Source: Piromyces finnis finn
Taxonomy: Eukaryota; Fungi; Neocallimastigomycota
DNA: 64,000 bases
Assembly: GCA_002104945.1 (NCBI GenBank)
Contig: MCFH01000008.1
Span: forward strand, 682,001 to 746,000
Reading direction: 5' to 3'
Shown here: one piece after another, positions 11,320 to 28,803 of the stretch
How positions within the stretch are numbered: the first letter of the stretch is position 1
How the letters are laid out: each line of letters starts with the position of its first letter
Made by a program: the position numbers and the translations under genes
The notes under the pieces: generated by a model
The model's input: only the letters and a program-made list of their open reading frames with translations
Told to the model about the DNA's origin: nothing
Databases searched by the model: none

Positions 11320-14300
11320 TCATTTTTTTTGCTCATTTTCAACACAATCATGATATTCAGATATTTCAGTTTGACAACTTTTAAAGGTAGTATAACTCAT
11401 TGCAGACATAACTGACACACGCTGTGGATTGAAATTATAATCTTTAATTATTGTAATACATTATTTTTATTGTAAAAAAGAAAATAAATAAAATATAAAA
11501 TGAAAAATAATTATTTTTTAGTATATAATTACTGAAAACAAACAAATAATCAAAACAAAGATTAAAAAAAAAAAAAAAAAAATTACCTATATCATTATTA
11601 TCTACATTCATTTCAGGACGTTGAGGAATGATATATTCATCGGGTTCAACTGTACTTTGTATATTCAAATTAATAAATGGATTTGTTAATGCGGATGCAA
11701 ATGATGAATGTTTATTTGAAGTAGCTATTGATGAAACATCTTGGGTTTTATTATTATTTATACCAGAATGAGAAATATTGGTTAAATCAACAATTTCCAT
11801 GCCATCCATTGAATCAGTATAAGATTGGAAATCAACCGAATCATCCAATGAATTAAAAAAGGATGTAGTAGATGATTTATAACGATGATGATTTACTTTA
11901 TTAAGAGAATTATTCTCTTTATAATTTAATGAATCACCTGTTAAAGATTTTTGTGGTGTCTGATATGGTGAAATATATGATTTTTGAGTATCAATAGAGT
12001 TATGAATTAATGGAGGTGACAAGAATCCTTCACTTTGCTTCAATTTTGAACCTGCATCTTTTATTAAATGTTCATTATTAGAACTACTAGGCGATGAGAA
12101 ATTTGTTTTAGTTGTACAAAATGTATTTGCTGAGTTTATTTCATTAGAATCCTTTGTAGAGTATGGTTTTTTTGGTATATCAACACTAAGTACGTTATTT
12201 ATTGATGAATGATCATGCATATTATGCTTATTGATAAATGATGACTTCAATAAATTAGATTTTGTTGGTAATTTACCTTTATTTTCATTATCTTGTTCCT
12301 TATTTAATTCATCTAAAATATGTTCTAAACGACTTGGTGTTAATGGTGGATTATCTATATTATTAGTAGTTATTGAATTACTATCGAAAGAGAATTTACT
12401 ATTAATAGAAACAGGTGAAAGTATTGAGTTATCGTTTTTTATTTCTTCTTTCTCCTTATTTTTTAAATCTATTTTAATAGGTTCAGGGAAACATGATACT
12501 GCTTGAGAAACAGGCATATTAAATACCATCGAAGCCAATGAAATATTATTATTAGTAGTATTTGATTCAATATTTATATCTTTATCCTTTTTTAGATAAC
12601 TATTTCCTGTATCAGAGAGAAGCAGTGAATTGTTATTTAAATTATTTAGATTAATTGTAGTATTAGCAAATGAAGAACTTGATATAGAATTATTACTGGT
12701 AGCACTTTCTACTGCAGAATATAATGAATCTGATTTTGATATAATTGATTCTAATGAGGGTTTTGTCATTTTTGGTGTATTGTCTTTATTACCTTGAATT
12801 ACTGTTGAATTTTGGGTAGATTCTGAAACCATTGAAAGATTCATTGCATCATTTACATTAAAGTTTGGACTCATATTATTATTTGTTTCTTCTTCTGGGG
12901 TCTTCACTTTTACTGATTTATTTGGACGAAGAGTTGTAGTATTACTAATATATGTATTTGCAATTGATTTGGTTTTACATTTTTTCGTTGCTTTAGTGCC
13001 CATAGAAGTAATACTTGGAGTACCAGAAACTGGTGAACCACCTGGACTGAAACGGTTCTCAAATGTATTTATGTCATTTACTTTTAATAGTTCTGGACTT
13101 CCTGTAGGACTATCTTCTGTGTTTTCATTTTCTTTATTTTTTGCTTCGTAAAAGTTAACTTGATAAGAGTAACTACGTTTGTGATATTGTATATCAATAT
13201 CTGATTTTTTAATATTATCAAGTACAGTAGAGTCATTGGCTTTATGTTTTATATATTTAGGTTTATCCAGATTTGAAGTTATATTTATATTATTATTATT
13301 ATTATTATTATTATGAGATATTGGAACTAAAACTTCAGAAGTAACAATTGAGTTTGGTGAGAGATAGTTATTATCAGTAATGATATTAGTATTCGAATTT
13401 TTTGAAATAGTATAATTGTCTTTTGAAAAAGTTGTTGGAATAACTAAATTTCCGATATTCGTATCTGATGTTATTGAATCTTCATCACCAATGCTTGTAA
13501 CTTCATCTAAATATTCAATATTTGGATCATTTTCATCTTTTCCAATTAAACCTACTGTAGAATTAGAAATCTTCTTTTTATGATATGATTCATGCTTTTG
13601 TTTTTGTTTATTATTACTATTAATAATATTATTTATTTTGGTTTCAGTCTTATCGTCATTGTCTTTATCATCATTGAATCCTGGTTTTGGTGTAATTATA
13701 GTAAGACCTGCATTATTATTATTATTATTATTAATATTATTATTAAATGTTGATAAATTACTAAGTTCTTGTTCTGAAGTTTCGTTGATCGTTTCAATTA
13801 CTGGGAAAGATAAATGCATTATTGCTCCTATTATAATGGCTTCAATTAGCATCCAAAAAGTGTGAAATAATGGAAATGCAGATAATACTTGTGCACAACA
13901 TGGCGTCAAATATACTTGAATAATTGTAATAGCTAATGGTATATTTGGTAAAATAGTATTCATACAAACAGCTATTGTTTTTTTATCATCTAAGTTAAAT
14001 ATTTTTGTCATAATTAGAGATATTATAAAACTTATTGAAGATAAAACAATTGAAACACAATATATTTCCCAATTTTTATAAAAAATTACACTAAAATCTT
14101 TTAATGACATTACTAATGATGTAATAATAATAATTGCACCCCAGAAAGTGGTACTTTTCTTTATCCAGTTTGCCCATAATGGTTTAAAGTGAAGAAGTAA
14201 ACTACCCAATAAAAAAGGTACTAAACAATAAATGATAATGAATGCCATATATTTATACTTATAGTAATTTATATAATAAACATATATTATTAAAAAAAAT

Positions 14301-18519: not shown

Positions 18520-18873
18520 TTTTTTTATTATTAAAAAAATAACTGTTCAGATCTAATAAAATTATTCTTAAGACCATATTTTGAAATTCTAGTAATGACA
18601 AATTTTGAAATCAGCTTAATACCATTATTGATAAGTGATATACCTTGGTAGTTATTACAATCTGTCAAATTTCCCTTCTTAGGAATAGAAACAATACTGG
18701 GTTCATTCCATGAACTGGGGAAGTCTCCATCCCAAATACAATTGAATAATTTAAGAATAAAATTTAAGCCATGTGCATACTTGAAGGAATTAATGTTTTG
18801 TAAAATTCAATTGAAATATCATCCGGACCTGATGCTTTATAGTTTGGAGTATAGAGGATATCTGACTTGACTT
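18520..18873 (-). pseudogene. Old LINE 'E1', RT fragment to the left of the E2 insertion (left limit approximate)
   Basis: Translates SIDEVKSDILYTPNYKASGPDDI..LFNCIWDGDFPSSWNEPSIVSIPKKGNLTDCNNYQGISLINNGIKLISKFVITRISKYGLKNNFIRSEQ. This is homologous to the E3 RT region (KAPGPDGIP..WNGSFPLKWNSASIVSIPKKGDLSNCNNYRGISLIN) and decays after EQ. Confidence 0.85.
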
Positions 18874-19141
18874 CATCAATACTTTTTTTTTTTTTTTTTT
18901 AACTGCATCAAATATTTTAAACTTTATTATTAATTTGATTAAAATTATAATACATGTAATAAAAAAATTAAAAATAAAAATAAAAATAAAAAAAAATATG
19001 TTTAAATAAACACAAATGAATAAAAACTGGGTATAATGTATTCTAGTAATTTTAATTAAAGTAAGAAAGCCACTATTATACTAAAGTATAATAATTGTAT
19101 TTGATTTCCAATGGGACACCGAGCCAAAGATCAAAATTTTA

Positions 19142-20404
19142 TCATGGGACAAAATTATGATCTCCATTGGTTGCGCTGGCCCTCCTGGCCTGTCTTACTG
19201 TTTCTTCAGCATTGACGCTCTTGGATGTTGCTTCAAACCTTATGAACATTGACCATTGCTGGCCAATAGCAAAAGACATGATTTTGGTTAGAAGTTCCGC
19301 GGTTACCGTCAAGAATGGTGTTCCTTCGTTAGTGCCAGATTGAATCTGACACTTGCAAAGTTCTTTCCATTCCCTTGAATTGTAATTGATATTGTTAAAA
19401 CTTCTTCCCCCAAGAAGGAATTTAAATATTTTACTGCACACACTAGAATAATCATACACATTAATATTCACCGGATTATTAGAACTATTACTATCATTAA
19501 CTAAATTACTATCTAAATTAGAATTATTATCTTCACTATTGCTATCATTACTAATATTATTATTTCTATTACTACTATTGTTATTATTACTATTGTTACT
19601 ATTACTATTGTAATTATTATTACTACTATTGTTACTATCTCTCTTTTCGTGATTCCACCCATTGGTGTTCCAACTAAGACAAAAAGAAAAGTTATCAGGC
19701 TTGTTGAATGAGGAAGAATCGTTGCTATTATTATTATTATTATTATTAAAGTCATCATTATTAATGGATGATGCATCAGAGGAATAAGTAGAACTATTAC
19801 TAGATGGCTGTGAAACTGAAGAACTATCAACTATTGAACTGTTATCAGAGTTGATAGAACTATTAGAATTAATTGTTGAATGTTGAGATTGAAATTGTGT
19901 TTGCTGTAGATCTGGAATATTTTCATGATGGGAAACTTGTTGAAGGTCTTGTTGAAGATCTTGTTGAAGATCGGATTGTAGATGAGATTGTTGAACTGAT
20001 TGTTGAATTGATTGTTGAATAGAATGTTGATGTTTATTAGAAACAAAAATTTTACGTTTGAGTGTGGAAAAAGTGTATTTGTGATTCCTTCTACTACGAG
20101 CTGAAAAGGAAATTGAGGTAACTGAAAGTTTCTTTTTTAACATGTGTAAAATTTTAATACAATCTTTCGATGAACCATGAACCTTGACTAAGAAAAAGTG
20201 ATCATTGAGAGTCTGGAAATATTTAACACTAATAACTGAATTAAATTTATCTTCTAGAATAACCTCGAGTTTTTCCCATAGCATATTTACTGACCATGAT
20301 CGAATACTACGGATAAAGAAGGAGCGAATATCATCTAAGGGTATACCATAAGACCGGGTACCACGTCTGATATAATTCTTATCTTTAATATAAAGGACTG
20401 ACAT
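19142..20404 (-). CDS. 420-aa E2 protein: RRM-like domain, Q/S/N linker, first APE motif, fused in frame to the ORF C-terminal domain (APE core and RT deleted)
   Basis: N-terminus aligns with the E3 N-terminus (IRRGTRSYG vs LRRGLRFFG; RSWS vs SSWS; FFLVKV vs YFILKV). CLSWNTNGWNHEKRD matches CTCWNINGWNPEKKD. KIFKFLLGG..LLTKIM..FIRF matches YIFTFLLGG..FLTKTI..FDRF of E3. Confidence 0.75.
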   Translation of the reverse strand: MSVLYIKDKNYIRRGTRSYGIPLDDIRSFFIRSIRSWSVNMLWEKLEVILEDKFNSVISVKYFQTLNDHFFLVKVHGSSKDCIKILHMLKKKLSVTSISFSARSRRNHKYTFSTLKRKIFVSNKHQHSIQQSIQQSVQQSHLQSDLQQDLQQDLQQVSHHENIPDLQQTQFQSQHSTINSNSSINSDNSSIVDSSSVSQPSSNSSTYSSDASSINNDDFNNNNNNNSNDSSSFNKPDNFSFCLSWNTNGWNHEKRDSNNSSNNNYNSNSNNSNNNNSSNRNNNISNDSNSEDNNSNLDSNLVNDSNSSNNPVNINVYDYSSVCSKIFKFLLGGRSFNNINYNSREWKELCKCQIQSGTNEGTPFLTVTAELLTKIMSFAIGQQWSMFIRFEATSKSVNAEETVRQARRASATNGDHNFVP

Positions 20405-21005
20405 GATAATTAATTCTAATTAAAAAATATTGAATATAAAATAAATACTAATAAAAATTATAAATATAACGTATATGGAAAAAAATCTGTCTCTCTCTCT
20501 CTTCTTAAAAGTACTGGATAGTACAAAAATTGTTACGATGCTTTGTTTAAAGTTTCTTTTTTTTTTTTTTGAATTCTAGTTGTAAATTTTCTTTAAAAAT
20601 TCTAGTTTTGGTTTGTTGTTAGTAAATTCGATTCGCTTTTTAACACTAAAATTGTTTGACTTTACTTTTCATTAAATATTTAAATTGGTAAAAAATTTGA
20701 ATCAAGAATGTCGACACTAGAGAGCTTGTGAATAGTATTTTTACATGATGTAGAGTGAATCAGTCTCTTACAAGAAACAATACAACAATAGCTACATGAA
20801 TATAAAAATACAATGCAAATGCTAAAGTTGACTACATTGGATTCTTACAAGAGAAGAGTAGTACTACATGAATACATGAATAAAAGAAAAAATACAGCAA
20901 CAAAATGTATTACTCTTCTAATTAAATACTATACAAACCTACCTGAATATCAAACATTCAACTTATTCATCAAATACTTAAATTCGATGGATAAATGTTT
21001 TTTAA

Positions 21006-21181
21006 TCGCTCAGTACCATGAGCTTAGTCCTAATAATATTTCCAAATAAAGACTAACCAAGCATCTATTGCGCAATACTTGGATTTAATTCTTTCTACTC
21101 TCTCAGTACCATGAGCGTGAGTAGAGCCCCTTGGGAAACTCCATTTATTAAATAAGTGAAGGCACGTTCCTAAGGGGGTTC
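21006..21181 (-). ncRNA. Structured 5'-terminal motif, copy A (E2)
   Basis: Five hairpins plus a pseudoknot, starting at the E2 5' TSD boundary. 9 substitutions and no indels versus copy C over ~175 nt. Confidence 0.6.
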
Positions 21182-21191
21182 CATCAATACT

Positions 21192-21387
21192 AATATCTTG
21201 GTTGATATCCCATTCATCAAGCATAGGAAGTGAAAAACACTTATTCGATTTTATAGTAAAGACTGACCAAATATCCATTGCGCAATGCTTTGATTTATTT
21301 CTACTCGTTCAGCACTATGAGCATGAGTAGAGCTCCTTGAGAAACTTCATTTATTAAAATATATAAAAGTACGTTCCCAAGGGGATT
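21192..21387 (-). mobile_element. Old LINE 'E1' 5' part: motif copy B (21257-21387) joined directly to an RT-region fragment (21192-~21256)
   Basis: Diverged motif copy followed by NKCFSLPMLDEWDINQDISID (compare E3 AWDINGPISIEE). This implies deletion of the rest of the 5'UTR, the RRM-like domain and APE. Confidence 0.75.
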
Positions 21388-21502
21388 AAAGAATTAGAAT
21401 AGATAATCAAAATCTTAAATTTAAGTGGTGTTTAGTAGGACAAATAAGTATAATACTATTTGAATTAGAAAGTTTGAAATTGGAGGTTTGCGAATTAAAT
21501 AA

Positions 21503-21508
<6 letters not shown>

Positions 21509-21564
<56 letters not shown>

Positions 21565-24500
21565 CTAGGAAGAGAATACACATCTTTTATTTATTTATTT
21601 AATTTGAGATATTACATAACATTAGGTGATAATACATATTGATATTGATATAATAAATAATAAATAAAAATAATAAAATATATATAAATAAAATTATAAA
21701 TATAAAATAATATAAAATAATTATTTAAGTTGCATAAAAGTTCAATGAACTCTGCAATTTGTACTGTGTGGGATTGGTCCCTACCTAATAAATTAAATGA
21801 AATAAAAAAAAGAAGTAACATCAGGTATGATAGTGTGGTGTCCACTAAACTCTCCCATGAGTTCATAATGTTTTCATTCGAATTTGAGGAAATACTAACA
21901 TTGAACCCTGTGTACGGAACATTGGAAATGTTCCTTTGCCATATCGGTACGACGTCGGCGTTCTTGATTACGTTAGGTGTCTTACTAAACCTATCAAAAA
22001 GTAGCTTCATAGAGCTACTAATGATAGGGATTGTTTTAGTAAGAAAAGCCGCGAGACCCTCTACATATGGAACATGAGACCCCGATGAACTGTAAAGCTG
22101 TTCATTCAAATGTCTTTGTTCCGCCTTATCGATTTGTAGCTCATCATAAGCTAAAGTTCCACCAAGAAGGAACGTAAAAATATAGTTATAAATTATTTTT
22201 CTTACTTCCGTTTCGGGGAGTAAGTATGTGATGAATTGATTCTTATATTTATTGTAAAAAAGGGTAAAAAGATCGTCAAGAAAGCTAAGTGAAGAAGCTC
22301 TGTATTCAGAGAATGCAGAACATTCTAATATCCAATGGTAAAAAGATTGTTCGTCATATCCGCAACATGGACAGACACGAGGGCAGTCAGGAGTAACTCT
22401 ATTACTAGCAATAGCAATTCGGGTAGTATTTTCATAACCGCATCGAATACGAATAATCCAGGTAATTCCTAAATTTAAGTGAGGTTTGTTGAGACCGATA
22501 TGCATTAGGCGATTTGAATTAAGGAATTTGTTGTTAGTATATCTGAGGGCTTTACTTCCATTATTTAGGCTACTATTATTCCAATAATATTCTCTAATAT
22601 CTTTAGTACTTTTAATATTTATTTTCATAAGCTTCTTATGTAGTGAACAAGATTCTTTGGCCCAAGAGTAATGAGACATGGGAGGAATAGATCGGACGAG
22701 ATTTTTAATTATACAATTTGATTTTCTCCATTTAACAAAGCATTTCACTTGTTGCGCAGCACAAATACCTGAAAGGGTAGGGATCTTCATATCTCTTGTA
22801 AGAGCATACAGACTAATAAATGAATTTCGTTCAAAAACAAAATCTTTGTTATTAAAACTTTTATTGTGAAAGCTATTGGCACTCCATAAAACAGCAGTAT
22901 TGATAAGAGATTGGACTCTTCTAGTTCTATTTTTGTTGGAACCAAGCAAAGGAGCATAATAAGAGACTTTGCTTAAAATATAAGAATGAATTACTATGTT
23001 TTTTAAGCCAATAGGAACACAATTGTTGGTGAGGAAGTTCTTAAAAGAGAATAAAGATTTCTGAACTTTTTTGTACATATTAGACAGAATAGGAGTCAGA
23101 GAAAGATCTTCGTCGAATGGGATTCCAAGATAAGTATAGCAAGAAACCTTTGGAATCGAGTACATACTGATGTAAAATGTTGGGTCGACATAACTAGGGG
23201 ATCTATTAAAGTTGATAGGTTTAACAACAATAGTTGCACATTTATTTATTCCAAAAGACATTTCATTTAGATTAGCCCAATCAAGGACTAGATTGAGCAT
23301 CTTTTGAAGGTTCTTCTTACTAGGAGCAATCAAAACAATGTCATCAGCGAAAAGGCCACCACAACAACGTTTATTACCTAAGCTAACTCCAAGCCTTTCA
23401 CATTTATTTAAAATATCATTGATAAAGAGGTTAAACAGTATAGGAGAAAGAGGACATCCTTGTCTTACACCACGGTTTATAGGGAATTCATTGGAAAGCA
23501 TATCCAAGAAACGTGCACGAGCTTTAGAGGTAGAGTAGAGATTATTGAGAAAATCAAAACATTTACCACGTATACCTAATTTATATAACTTTGTAAGGAT
23601 ATTAAAAATAGGAACTGAGTCGTATGCTTTTTTAAGGTCTAGAAAGGCGACATAAGTGGCTTTTCCTTTAAATTTTCTTCTTTGACAGATTTCTCTAATG
23701 GAAACAAATAAGCTAATACATTCTTCTTTATTGCGAAAACCAAATTGCTCAGGTCTTATAAAATTATGAGAAAGAGCATACTTTGAAATTCTATTAGTTA
23801 CAATTTTTGAAATGATTTTAAGACCTACATTGATGAGAGAAATACCACGATAATTATTACAGTTTGAAAGATCGCCTTTCTTTGGAATAGAAACAATGGA
23901 AGCAGAGTTCCATTTCAAAGGAAAGGAACCATTCCAGATTTTATTAAAAATTAATTTAAGACAATTTCCAGCAGACTTATGTTCTTTTTCCAGTTCTTCG
24001 TTACAAAAGAAAGCTTTGAAAAATTCAATTGGGATACCATCGGGACCTGGAGCCTTGTTATTCTTCATTGACAGAACAACATTTCTAATTTCCTCAATAG
24101 AAATGGGACCATTTATATCCCATGCTATTTGATTGATATGGTTGAATTGGAAGGCTCTTTCCCAGTAACCACGATTTAAGCTGTGATTTGTAACATCAGA
24201 TGCAAGATTTTCATAATGTTCAGCCCAACGTTTTAATTGTTCTTGAGGAGTAAATAAATCCTTGCCATTCTTGTCCTTAATAGTTGAAACATGGGAGGAC
24301 GAATAACTTGGTTTGGCAAGTTTTTTAAGGCCTTTCCAACCTTGTCTAAAGCTTTTATCAATAAAATGTTTACCGATAGAAACAATATTAGCTTTATAGA
24401 GATTGGATCTGAATTTACTCTTAACCTTTTTGATGGTATTACATAGATTTTGGTATATGGAGAACTGGTTAAGATAATTTTCCATGTCAGCGCAATCTGA

Positions 24501-27317
24501 AAGGGGCTTAATATTTTTGTAAGCCAGGTGTTTTTCATGTGATAAGTTTTTGATGTATTGAGGGCAATGAAATGCTGGACCTTTTAAATCTGCAGGCACA
24601 ATGGCTTTTATTTCTTTACCTATAGTTTTGGAAGTATCTAAAAATCTTGAAACCATATCATCAGCCGAAAGGCTATCGCAATTAGCTTCAAGCTCGGAAG
24701 CTAGAACAGCAAAGCGATTACTAGTAAGAATGTCAGAACACTTTGTGTTACAGATATGACTTGACCACTTAAAGGTCTTCTTAGGCTTTTTGAAACCATC
24801 CGAAGAGTCTTTTTTACAAGACACAAGGATCGGTTTGTGATCAGAAACATCGTGGAAAACTTCACAAACTGAAGATTTGTTTATGTGTTCTGTTATAGCT
24901 TTGTTGTATATAATATGATCAATGCATGAAGATTTAGATCCTTTTTCCCAGGTAAAATTATTATCAGTTAACTCAGCCATAGTCCAATCCGGGAAGTGTT
25001 GTGATATATAAGATTTGATTTTAATAGCTAACATATTAAAGTCTCCTACAAGGATAGCTGGGTGGTTGAATTTGTTATGCGTTGTTAACCACTTATCAAG
25101 TTCATCAAAGGCAATTAATCTAGCATCCGGCCATCTAGTTTGCGGGAAGTAAATATTACCGATGGTACATCTCTGGTTCCAAAATGACAATCAATATTGT
25201 AACTGAAATGATGTACTTATATAGAAGAGGTTCAGGAGTAAAGGAACAAGAGTTATGAACACCAATGTAAAGCCCTCTCATGCCTGGAACTTTAGGATTA
25301 GCACGTCTGTGTACTGGTTTATAGTTCGGTAGGCATGGGGAGGAAATTGCATTACCACAGAGGAATTGGCTGTTACCTACTTCTTGAAGACAGACACATA
25401 CAGGTTTGAAAACAGAGATTGAGTATAAAACACCGTCCTTTTTCTCCGGGTTCCAACCATTGATGTTCCAACAAGTACATAAGTTGAAAAAGGAAGCATT
25501 AGAGCTTAGATGACTAAAATAGAAATCGTCAGAGAGTGGACCAGTAGTAGATTTGATAGATCGTTTGTTTTTGTATGATCTATTGTTTTTGAGCTTATCA
25601 ATGAATTTCCAAGATATTTTACTAGAGATTGGGAGTTTTTTAGAAAGTGAGTGTATAAGTAACATGGCTTTAAGCGGGCATTTTCCATTGACTTTTAGAA
25701 TGAAATAGGTACCGAGTGATTGTGAATATTTTTTGGTGAGGGATTGAAGAATATCATTGAAAGGTTGAATGTCCTTTAAAAGAAATTCCATTAGTCGTTG
25801 TTTGGACCATGAACTAAGATCATGGATAAAAATTAGATATGATTTATTGGAGTTAGATCCGAAGAAACGAAGACCACGTCGTAAGGTAGGTACAGTACAA
25901 TTGGTATTGTTCATTTTGAAAGAACTTCTTATGACAATAGATATTAATAATTTGAAGTATTGATATAATGATATAAATAAGATAATGAATAAAATATATT
26001 GTAAAATAAAAATAATATTAGTAAAGACGGATATATTATATAGCTAGTGGATTATTTGTCAAACAATATTTTAAATTTTATAACTGGAAAAGTGGCTAAG
26101 TTGTTGACAAACTTAGTTCTAACTCTACTGAAGACTTTAAACGGGAAAATAAATTTTGAATATCTATCACTTTGGATTTCTGTATTATAACTGTATTTTG
26201 AAAGCTCTTTATATTTATAAGAATTGTATAATTTATTGGATGATTATTGTATTGTGTTGATTCTGATTGTTGAAATTGAACATTCATTTAGGTTGTTTAT
26301 GTTGTAAGGTAGAGAGATAATAAGAGTGAAAAGTTGTTATATCAAAAATAATGGAAAAAGTTGAAGAATTTTGGGTAAACATAATAAAATTTTTTTTTTT
26401 TTTTTAAAGATAAAATTGAAACAAGAGTAGTATTTACAATATAAAAATAGAATACTCGATTTTCCAGGATAGAAGCTTTGATAATAAAAGTATTAAAAAA
26501 AGGTGTTAATACTTACCATAATAGTCCATAATAAACCTAATTAAGTTATACAAATATATAAATATGCATATAATATAAAGTATAAGAAATATATATATAT
26601 ATATAGAAAAGAGATAGAAAAAGTATACAAAGGAATGTTAGTAGAAAAGAGATTCCTTGGAAAATCTAGAGTTACAAAAAATAAGAAATAAAAAAGATAT
26701 TACTAGAATCATATAAAATCATAAAGGAAAAATAAAAAAGCCGCGCCCCTCGAAAATAATAAAAATAGAAAAAAAAAATAAAAGATTAAATATGATTATA
26801 GTAATGAAAGCCGCACCCCACACGAAACTCAAGAATAAATGAAAGGAATAACAAACTAACTGAAAAAACAAAACTATCTGACTAATCAACATATAAAGAA
26901 TAAAAAAGGAATAAAAGAACAAAGAGAATAAGTAGTAAACTGGGATAACAAATTATCGATGAAAGCTAAAATAAAAAATGAAATCAAGAAATATTCAAAA
27001 TCAGTATTTAATACTACCGAATCAAACAATTTTAAGTTTAAAATAATATGTTATAAAGGTTGTTAAAGCAACTACTATCTAAAATAAGTTGAAGGTGTAA
27101 GGGATATATGATATAACAACTAACACTCAAATTATCGACTCTGTTCGCTCAGTACCATGAGCTTAGTCCTAATAATATTTCCAAATAAAGACTAACCAAG
27201 CATCCATTGCGCAATACTTGGATTTAATTCTTTCTACTCTCTCAGTACCATGAGCATGAGTAGACCCCCTTGAGAAACTACATTTATTAAATAAATGAAG
27301 GCACGTACCCAAGAGGG
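21509..27317 (-). mobile_element. Full-length APE-RT non-LTR retrotransposon (LINE) 'E3', ~5.8 kb
   Basis: Poly(A) tail (T-run 21508-21561). 14-bp TSD TTAAATAATAAAAT at 21495-21508 and 27318-27331. About 1.4 kb of 5'UTR beginning with motif copy C. APE-RT coding region. Confidence 0.9.
21612..25914 (-). CDS. E3 polyprotein (RRM-like, APE endonuclease, reverse transcriptase, CX2CX8HX4C knuckle), broken by one frameshift near 25190-25200
   Basis: APE motifs WNING, CLQEV, GNIYFP, LVGDFN, IDHI and SDHKP. RT motifs KAPGPDG, YRGISL, FLDLKKAYDSV, GVRQGCPLSPILF, LFADD and YTYLGI. Knuckle CPCCGYDEQSFYHWILEC. ORFs 25156-25914 and 21612-25190 overlap, and APE is split between them. Confidence 0.9.
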
Positions 27318-27319
27318 TT
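27145..27319 (-). ncRNA. Structured 5'-terminal motif, copy C (E3)
   Basis: Starts at the E3 5' TSD boundary. Stem ACCCUCUUGGG/CUCAAGGGGGU (~27264-27318), hairpin 27234-27263, palindrome 27205-27216, hairpin UUAGUC/GACUAA, and a second GCUCA-UGGUAC-UGAGC at 27147-27162. Confidence 0.6.
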
Positions 27320-27813
27320 AAATAATAAAATGATTTAAATAATAATATTAAATTATGTGTTATAATTACACTGCATATTCAAACATTAATGATAATAATA
27401 ATATATAAATAATAAAATAATGTTTTTATTTTTTAATTATAAAAATACTTTATTATTAAAATATAATCTATAAGTAGATTTATAATATATCTTTGATAAA
27501 TTGATATTTTTTTATTAAAACAATTATTTCTATTTTAATTTTACAATAATAAATTTTAATATTTAATTTTTTTTTTTTTATATTTTATTATTTATTTTTT
27601 ATTTTATTTTTTTTTTTTTTAATTTTATTTTTAATGTTTTTTATTTTTTATTTACTTTTTTTTTTATTTTCATTATTCTATTTTAATTATTATTACTTTT
27701 TTATTTTCTAATTACAAATATTTAATATTACTATTGATAAATAGTATTATTAAAAATTTTATATAAAATAAAAAAATTAAAAAAATTGCATTTTAAAAAG
27801 ATGATTTATTAAT

Positions 27814-28803
27814 TTAGAATAAGAGGGTGAGAGCCATAGCTGAGGCAGCAAGAGTAATTTTAGAAACAGTAGTAGTAGTAGAATCAGAAGAGAATATTCC
27901 AGTAACACCATCCTTAGCCTTATCAATAAAATTCTTTTCTGGCTTTTCAGCAGATTTAACCATGTCGGCGTTTTCATTCTTACCGTCACAAATTAAGTTT
28001 TCTTTATTAACGAAAAGACCTTTAGCGATTTTACATACAGATTCATCATAATTTTCATTGTCCTTAAGGTTAATAGCGTAAGCATAGCATGCGCAAGCAG
28101 CCTTAGAGTCAATGGTTTGTTCACCTTCAATTTTAGTAGTAGTAGTTTGGAATTTCATCATATGAACACCACAATATTGATTATCAACATACTTTGAACA
28201 TTGGAAACTAGTAGCGTATTCTAAAGAATTGAGCATTAATTCAATAATAGAAATAGCTTTTTTATCATCATCAGAAGAAAGACAATCATTTTTAGCATTA
28301 CTTGGAAGAACGTTTCCATAACATTCTGGTTTATCACAGAATTTAGTGACATCAAATGGTTCAGCAATAAAGCTGTTAATACAATCATTAGCACCCTTGA
28401 ATTCTTTAGTTTCCATGTAAGCATCAATGGCCTTAGCACATTTTTCACTAACATTTAATCCACTTAAGCTGTTGGTAAAAGAATCAACAACATCTTCAAA
28501 ACTGGTGAATTTAGCTTGAGTAGAAGATTCCTTGTCAACAGCAATCCACATAGAATTTATAACAGGTGTAGTAAGACCACTTAAGGTACTATCATTACCA
28601 CCAAAAACCTTGTCAATTAAACCCTTAGTACTATCGTAAGCATCAGTAGCTTTATTGTAGGCATCCTTAATACCGTTAAAAGCATCTTTAATATCATCAG
28701 CACCAATTAAATTTTTGATTCCGCTTAATAAATCATCTTTAGCATTAACTTTATTGATAGCAGCTAAAGAAGCGATACTTAAAATGCAATTAATAAATTT
28801 CAT
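27814..28803 (-). CDS. Secreted Cys-rich protein with probable GPI-anchor signal (329 aa, intronless)
   Basis: Signal MKFINCILSIASLAAINKVNA. C-terminus SSDSTTTTVSKITLAASAMALTLLF. Ten Cys are shared with the 30055 paralog. Confidence 0.85.
   Translation of the reverse strand: MKFINCILSIASLAAINKVNAKDDLLSGIKNLIGADDIKDAFNGIKDAYNKATDAYDSTKGLIDKVFGGNDSTLSGLTTPVINSMWIAVDKESSTQAKFTSFEDVVDSFTNSLSGLNVSEKCAKAIDAYMETKEFKGANDCINSFIAEPFDVTKFCDKPECYGNVLPSNAKNDCLSSDDDKKAISIIELMLNSLEYATSFQCSKYVDNQYCGVHMMKFQTTTTKIEGEQTIDSKAACACYAYAINLKDNENYDESVCKIAKGLFVNKENLICDGKNENADMVKSAEKPEKNFIDKAKDGVTGIFSSDSTTTTVSKITLAASAMALTLLF

Follow-up and report, generated by a model that had tools for sequence, protein, structure and literature searches.

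A 64,000-nt stretch of the genome of the anaerobic fungus Piromyces finnis (contig MCFH01000008.1, positions 682,001 to 746,000; hereafter the window) contains long interspersed nuclear elements (LINEs) whose 5′ ends are formed by a common module of 175 nt. As judged from sequence comparison, the transcript of this module is a structured RNA that would constitute a new family for Rfam, and it is probably not a ribozyme. We propose, with a probability of roughly 45%, that the module is a portable, non-catalytic 5′ leader "monomer" of gut-fungus LINEs, i.e., of poly(A)-tailed elements with a single open reading frame (ORF) for an apurinic/apyrimidinic endonuclease (APE) and a reverse transcriptase (RT), and that it combines an internal promoter with an RNA fold that clamps the 5′ end. 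The 5′ end is the least understood part of LINEs, in particular the way in which a full-length copy recovers both its promoter and its exact 5′ terminus.

The module occurs at three places in the window, in agreement with the original prediction: complete at the heads of elements E3 (copy C) and E2 (copy A), and as an old, partial copy B (Table 1). It comprises the first 173 bases of E3, read from 27317 to 27145, with the minus strand as the sense strand. The motif had been predicted to start at the boundary of the target-site duplication (TSD), and it does abut the TSD of E3; however, it starts at C 27317, and the two leading A's formerly assigned to it belong to the 14-bp duplication ATTTTATTATTTAA. 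The TSDs thus set the first base of both E2 and E3 as the C of CCCTC or CCCCC.

The sense RNA of copy C folds with a minimum free energy (MFE) of −53 kcal/mol (z = −3.3; none of 200 shuffles was as good), compared with −37.4 kcal/mol (z = −2.1) for the antisense strand, and the sense fold recovers the helices that had been proposed originally. From 5′ to 3′, helix P1 stands at the 5′ tip and encloses an inner hairpin, a bulge within P1 forms a 5-bp pseudoknot with the loop of hairpin H2, and hairpins H3, H4, and H5 follow; the H2 loop sequence GGUAC is found again in H5. The core of this architecture occupies ~85 nt of the 175-nt module. Two details of the earlier drawing are revised. The palindrome that had been placed in a stem is better drawn as a stem, CCAAGUAUU/GAUGCUUGG, with the loop GCGCAAUG, which is the form kept in relatives, and the sense strand contains six G-U pairs rather than three.

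The fold was compared with that of related LINEs on contigs encoding ORFs 42–67% identical to those of the window, with Piromyces sp. E2 and Orpinomyces among the named sources. Piromyces sp. E2 (L101), two NCBI assemblies (L092, L095), and gut metagenome contigs (L097, L100, L103) have homologous 5′ heads; in the two NCBI assemblies, a homologous module of ~95 nt is common to two LINE families. The covariance model was too narrow to detect loci of other species, and these homologues were located by eye and with regular expressions; metagenome pattern scans for the H2 loop plus palindrome and for the H3 hairpin each gave 0 matches. Separate MFE folds of eight lineage sequences displayed the same layout of P1, H2, and H3, in which P1 opens with CCC and closes with GGG around an inner hairpin, and a two-part H2 carries a 6-nt loop. 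H3 presents the identical loop on quite different stems in three lineages. MAFFT/RNAalifold recovered P1, the inner hairpin, and H2 from the cross-lineage set with one H2 stem misregistered, and the pairs were therefore tabulated helix by helix. In this table, 217 of the 223 cells are canonical while every stem differs in sequence between lineages.

The pseudoknot, which had also been predicted, retains its complementarity in homologous columns across the lineages: 44 of 45 cells are paired, and three of the five pairs are altered on both sides. The pairing GUGCC:GGUAC of the window is replaced elsewhere by GUACC:GGUAC, GUACC:GGUGC, ACACC:GGUGU, GUACU:AGUAC, or CCGUA:UACGG, and even the decayed copy B keeps a bulge GUACU complementary to its H2 loop AGUGC. 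Dimerisation of RNAs through palindromic GUAC or GCGC loops was considered and rejected for H2, since the palindrome is lost in three lineages, in which the complementarity to the bulge is kept. All nine comparisons of the two strands favor the sense strand, by 2–16 kcal/mol in stability. Because the stems covary across LINE lineages and the advantage of the sense strand is consistent, the fold is considered real, in agreement with the prediction of a structured RNA, and we conclude that selection acts on an RNA structure of the sense strand.

Within the P. finnis genome, 97% of 1924 pair cells are canonical, compared with 37–46% for controls with slid partners, and insertions and deletions are confined to the linker (87–94) and the H4 loop. 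Covariation is weak at this level, with only one pair changed on both sides, because the copies are either young or decaying and dead. The terminal CCC:GGG of P1 is kept in every lineage compared and is lost in one within-genome variant, which has C for the last G. A more distant LINE lineage, with an ORF 43% identical, bears a different 5′ head (L098:83-200, L099:1-190), which also opens with CCCC and forms a long helix at its terminus (CCCCGAUGAAG..CUUCAUCAGGGG); a partial head-to-tail duplication is present in its 5′ region too.

Comparison with catalogued RNAs gave no assignment. Rfam yielded no match at the gathering score over the whole window, and at E ≤ 10 on 26900-27500 it yielded two noise matches (SNORD124 and ylbH); thus, no match was obtained to the covariance models of hepatitis delta virus (HDV)-like, hammerhead, twister, twister-sister, pistol, or hatchet ribozymes, and the motif is uncatalogued, as the original prediction had anticipated. 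ARAGORN found 0 genes on 20900-27340, and the motif is not tRNA-like. These results bear on the reading that had first been entertained, in which a new self-cleaving ribozyme would act on read-through transcripts, cutting them immediately before P1 and thereby creating the 5′ end of the LINE, in the way of the HDV-like ribozymes of R2, RTE, and L1Tc. In its favor, the elements of all lineages begin with the first base of P1, and the interleaving of P1 with the pseudoknot resembles that of P1 and P2 in HDV. However, an HDV-like fold was rejected, as had been suspected from the strand order: the 3′ strand of the pseudoknot sits in the loop of H2, a hairpin that itself covaries, between its two strands, and not after P4 as in the nested double pseudoknot P1-P2-P3-P3′-P1′-P4-P4′-P2′ of HDV. 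The putative P3/L3 was likewise rejected, given that the inner hairpin varies freely between 3 and 8 bp with unrelated loops in each lineage (UUA, GAAA, UUAU, and one 9-nt loop) and that no P1.1 is formed. Neither the catalytic C of J4/2 nor any other invariant junction nucleotide is found, with 0–4 variable nucleotides between the 3′ strand of P1 and H2; the linkers between helices vary from lineage to lineage, whereas the catalytic core is conserved in most small ribozymes. The motif contains CUGAGAG and CUGAGCG and never CUGANGA, and therefore lacks the CUGANGA/GAAA core of the hammerhead.

The distribution of the module in the genome was determined by pattern counts in 56.46 Mb (232 contigs), for which the reversed-pattern controls were all 0. 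At least 572 unit starts are present, compared with a total of 338 complete modules in families 1 and 2, of which 310 are followed by family-2 (E2-type) sequence and 28 by family-1 (E3-type) sequence; a third family that carries the complete module is old and rare. The module thus heads at least three LINE families, and its 3′ boundary (..CUGAGCGA) is identical to the base in these three, whose downstream sequences are unrelated. Between families 1 and 2, the module is 95–97% identical, whereas the remainder cannot be aligned at the DNA level, and at the protein level a 72-aa piece of the RT alone aligns (67%). The sequence after the module in family 3 again begins with CCCUCUUUU and closes on AAAAGAGGG, and one family-3 copy is apparently without the module. 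On this basis, the module acts as a cassette set before pre-existing 5′ ends. Copies start uniformly at (N)CCCTC with the TSD adjoining the first C, and TSDs together with 40+ copies place the first base of the element at the start of P1. A genome pattern search for the free 175-nt RNA retro-copied with a poly(A) tail gave 0 matches.

Family-2 LINEs frequently lie head to tail at a spacing of 5.65–5.8 kb (C156:447751/453548/459325; C151:643874/649678; C124:139028/144693), and many 5′ ends directly follow the poly(A) of a copy lying upstream (..GATGCCGTT(A)n, then CCCTC; L018, L091:1500-1570), which suggests either that insertion prefers poly(A) tails or that the elements were amplified in tandem. 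In family 3, a stretch of ~80 nt within its 5′ untranslated region (UTR; L037:1880-1960, equal to L061) matches more than 30 other places of the genome at 89–95% and is a separate short repeat.

In many copies, partial units stand head to tail, and the first 123–135 nt of the module are reiterated in this way. The downstream unit always begins with CCCTC, while the upstream unit breaks at 68, 82, 122, 125, 137, or past the module, and one extra base is present at some unit junctions. One junction, in which unit positions 3–125 and a G precede the next unit (GGATGCTTGGT-G-CCCTCTTRGG), occurs 241 times (control 0), often at a spacing of 123–124 nt and across many contigs with different flanks. 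One locus contains five 137-nt units with a different junction, and further arrays have periods of 69, 32, and 129 nt. The number of upstream units varies between copies, with 0, 1, 2, and 4 seen, and H4 and H5 are confined to the last, complete unit. A repeat with a period of ~95 nt in one copy (L034:1500-1760) has another origin, namely recombination between the identical 14-nt H2 and H5 hairpins (CUCAUGGUACUGAG).

The presence of an identical junction in hundreds of dispersed copies means that the array travels through the RNA intermediate. The 241 inherited junctions argue that the starts of internal units are passed uncut, as an efficient cut at each unit 5′ end would prevent such inheritance, and arrays in which the internal units have an intact P1 are likewise inherited. 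Together with the lack of a known catalytic core and of conserved junction nucleotides, this disfavors the self-cleaving RNA of the original prediction, which we now regard as quite improbable. Of the alternatives that it had listed, an internal promoter is the best fit to the monomer arrays.

The mechanism that we favor for the leader monomer requires no self-cleavage. At the DNA level, the module would be an internal promoter, with transcription beginning at the first base of the module itself, in the manner of the mouse L1 monomers and of Pr77; LINEs that insert at random all depend on an internal promoter at the 5′ end, and the module is the only conserved and transferable 5′ part of these LINEs. 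The RNA would then remain on the transcript, where the paired and pseudoknotted 5′ tip could protect or mark the 5′ end, e.g., against 5′→3′ decay, with the three terminal G:C pairs and the pseudoknot keeping the first base buried. When the reverse transcriptase arrives at the RNA's 5′ terminus, it may switch to a second template, by which units would arise and move between families. A switch at the 5′ end would account for the constant CCCUC start of the downstream unit, the variable break of the upstream unit, and the occasional extra base; a layout in which a unit running from position 1 to x is followed by one running from position 1 to the end would be the expected product. The second, RNA-level role is proposed because a promoter accounts for portability and arrays and not for the covarying fold.

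A function at the DNA level alone, e.g., through palindromes bound by transcription factors, with no role for the RNA, or alternatively an internal ribosome entry site (IRES) for the downstream ORF, appears highly improbable. The core of H3 in DNA, ATTGCGCAAT, a perfect bZIP/C-EBP-type palindrome, would suit the former, as would the resemblance of the arrays to those of mouse L1 (PMC9022269). However, the stems covary while the palindrome is not kept, relatives carrying UAUGCGCAAUGA and AUCGCGCAAUGG, and the G-U pairs favor the sense strand. With regard to an IRES, the ORF starts 0.6–1.4 kb downstream, which is too far for the intergenic-region type.

Several observations weigh against the leader-monomer reading. 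A DNA promoter by itself leaves the covarying RNA fold unexplained. The pseudoknot, when taken lineage by lineage, is not significant against shuffles (P = 0.04–0.39), and its support comes from the homologous columns across lineages instead of single-lineage tests. Primary transcription seldom begins with a pyrimidine, so that the C in first position is a hint of processing at the 5′ end. In addition, the internal unit of the dominant dimer carries G10A (CCCTCTTAGG), which weakens its P1; therefore, the terminal unit might still cleave even though the array is inherited. In principle, arrays could also form anew with every insertion, through template jumps onto monomer RNAs that had been cleaved off. 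The pyrimidine start and the G10A of the commonest dimer are both in keeping with a ribozyme, as are cleaved-off monomers that act as jump acceptors and regenerate identical junctions, and the many copies that directly follow the poly(A) of another or lie head to tail make co-transcripts likely.

A processed end could also be produced without catalysis. An exonuclease-blocking 5′ structure, akin to an exoribonuclease-resistant RNA (xrRNA) or the 5′ stems of narnaviruses and devoid of a promoter of its own, would stall 5′→3′ trimming at the G/C-clamped, pseudoknotted P1. Longer or decapped transcripts would then serve as the source, and the stall would both fix the exact 5′ end and stabilize the RNA. 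The CCC:GGG clamp stands at the very first base in every lineage compared, in an AT-rich genome, and the first base is a pyrimidine. Moreover, a stall at the first unit would spare the downstream units, which fits inherited arrays whose 5′-most unit begins at the exact unit start. In flavivirus xrRNAs, a pseudoknot joins the interior of a helix to sequence 3′ of that helix, and in the module a pseudoknot likewise ties the inside of P1 to sequence on its 3′ side. However, no Rfam xrRNA model matched and the topology is only loosely similar, randomly inserting LINEs would still require a promoter, and short first units of 69 or 32 nt, which lack the pseudoknot, also begin with CCCTC. A literature search found no paper tying an exoribonuclease-resistant element to a cellular retrotransposon. 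We consider this explanation unlikely. Taken together, the possibility that the fold alone makes the LINE 5′ end from longer transcripts, with no promoter at that site, either as a new ribozyme class that cuts before the first C of P1 and whose internal units are disabled by G10A, or as an xrRNA-like staller, which would be the first in a cellular retrotransposon, seems doubtful.

The fold might instead be a protein-binding signal for ribonucleoprotein assembly, which recruits a protein of the element or a host factor for packaging, for second-strand steps, or for recognition of the template end. R2 has a 5′ protein-binding RNA and a pseudoknot, and in the module the conserved loops (GCGCAAUG in three lineages and the GGU-containing 6-nt loops), the position of a conserved fold at the end of the template, and the frequent template switching exactly at that end would be consistent with such a role. 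Since the module serves LINE families whose ORFs are only 42–67% identical to those of the window, a protein-independent or host-directed function is the easier explanation, and we hold little expectation that assembly is the principal function. The leader monomer with promoter and clamping fold remains the reading that we prefer.

Table 1. Positions of the module, its helices, and the surrounding element in the window.
Feature	Position	Strand	Remarks
Complete 175-nt 5′ leader module of LINE E3 (family 1), copy C	27145..27317	-	Unit positions 3-175 in the numbering of the original prediction; first base of E3 is 27317
Remainder of LINE E3: family-specific 5′ UTR, frameshifted APE+RT ORF, 3′ UTR, poly(A)	21509..27144	-	
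TSD of E3, 14 bp, ATTTTATTATTTAA	27318..27331, partner 21495-21508		
Module copy A, head of E2	21006..21179	-	95% identity to copy C over 175 nt
Module copy B: old, decayed, partial (unit positions 3 to ~134)	21257..21385	-	82% identity
P1 5′ strand, CCCUCUUGGG	27308..27317	-	Pairs with 27265-27274
P1 3′ strand, CUCAAGGGGG	27265..27274	-	
Bulge GUGCC, 5′ half of the pseudoknot	27300..27304	-	Pairs with GGUAC of the H2 loop (27245-27249)
Inner A/U hairpin inside P1	27281..27297	-	Sequence and loop differ among lineages
H2: outer stem CUACUC/GAGUAG, inner stem CUCA/UGAG, 6-nt loop UGGUAC, 3′ bulged A	27234..27263	-	
H3: stem CCAAGUAUU/GAUGCUUGG, loop GCGCAAUG	27196..27221	-	DNA core is the palindrome ATTGCGCAAT
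H4 (UUAGUCUU/AGGACUAA, variable loop) and H5 (GCUCA-UGGUAC-UGAGC)	27147..27195	-	

E3 extends from C 27317 to a poly(A) at ~21509-21562. Its coding part is a single APE+RT frame split by a frameshift (25914-25156, then 25190-21612), and the C-terminus of the resulting 252-aa "ORF1", at the frameshift in 25156-25190, already carries the first endonuclease motifs. Intact relatives encode one protein of ~1376 aa, with APE at residues 148–359 and RT at residues 675–931. E2 is a family-2 element of 2.3 kb with an internal deletion (18901-21179, TSD GTATTGATG), which retains the 5′ module, a 420-aa ORF at 19142-20404 that gave no Pfam match, a remnant of the RT (18534-18883), and the 3′ end of its family. 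Other long ORFs of the window without a Pfam match encode 934 aa at 11444-14248 (-) and 329 aa at 27814-28803 (-).

The module unites a compact, covariation-backed RNA at the first base of the element with swapping between families and reiteration of monomers. It thus offers a tractable system for two questions, namely whether the monomer arrays are products of template switching at the RNA 5′ terminus and whether this terminus is protected or defined by a pseudoknot located there, and it provides a marker for full-length LINEs in the genomes of anaerobic fungi. Were the module to prove catalytic or resistant to Xrn1, it would represent a new class of either.

Among known systems, the HDV-like ribozymes of R2 and RTE elements share with the module a P1 that begins at the first nucleotide of the element and interleaves with a second long-range pairing. 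In the module, however, a hairpin loop contains the 3′ strand of this second pairing, the counterpart of P3 is a long, variable hairpin, and P1.1, the conserved catalytic C, and a covariance-model match are lacking. Flavivirus xrRNAs and the 5′ stems of yeast narnaviruses have a 5′-closing helix, a pseudoknot from the inside of that helix to its 3′ side, and a G/C clamp. The module resembles them in each of these respects, its clamp lying at the first bases, while the roles of strands and loops are swapped and no sequence or covariance-model similarity is found.

The closer counterparts are 5′ modules of other LINEs. Pr77 is a 5′ hallmark common to several trypanosomatid retroposon families and has internal promoter activity (PMC3383444, PMC4748587). 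Like Pr77/L1TcRz of L1Tc-ingi (PMC3383444, PMC3185411, PMC4035085, PMC4748587), the module is a short 5′-terminal hallmark of several retroposon families in one genome, shared by three families in P. finnis and by two in other assemblies. Both lie at the first base, are structured as RNA, and have been proposed as internal promoters. However, Pr77 measures 77 nt and adopts the fold of an HDV-like ribozyme with cleavage at +1, whereas the module, at 175 nt with a core of ~85 nt, has no HDV features, is probably not self-cleaving, and is tandemly reiterated, unlike Pr77.

The promoters of mouse L1 are tandem monomers, the duplication of which compensates for 5′ truncation (PMC9022269, PMC6454616). 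The 5′ UTR monomers of mouse L1 (L1Md) and the module are alike in forming head-to-tail units of ~125–200 nt at the 5′ end of a LINE in a number that varies between copies, in being exchanged between LINE lineages, and in that their duplication can offset 5′ truncation. The arrays of the module differ in that the 5′-most unit begins at the exact unit start and the upstream units are cut on their 3′ side, which is the signature of template switching. We know of no covarying, pseudoknotted RNA fold in the mouse L1 monomers. Leader or monomer modules at the 5′ end of LINEs are thus already known as a kind, and it is the RNA fold described here that is new to Rfam.

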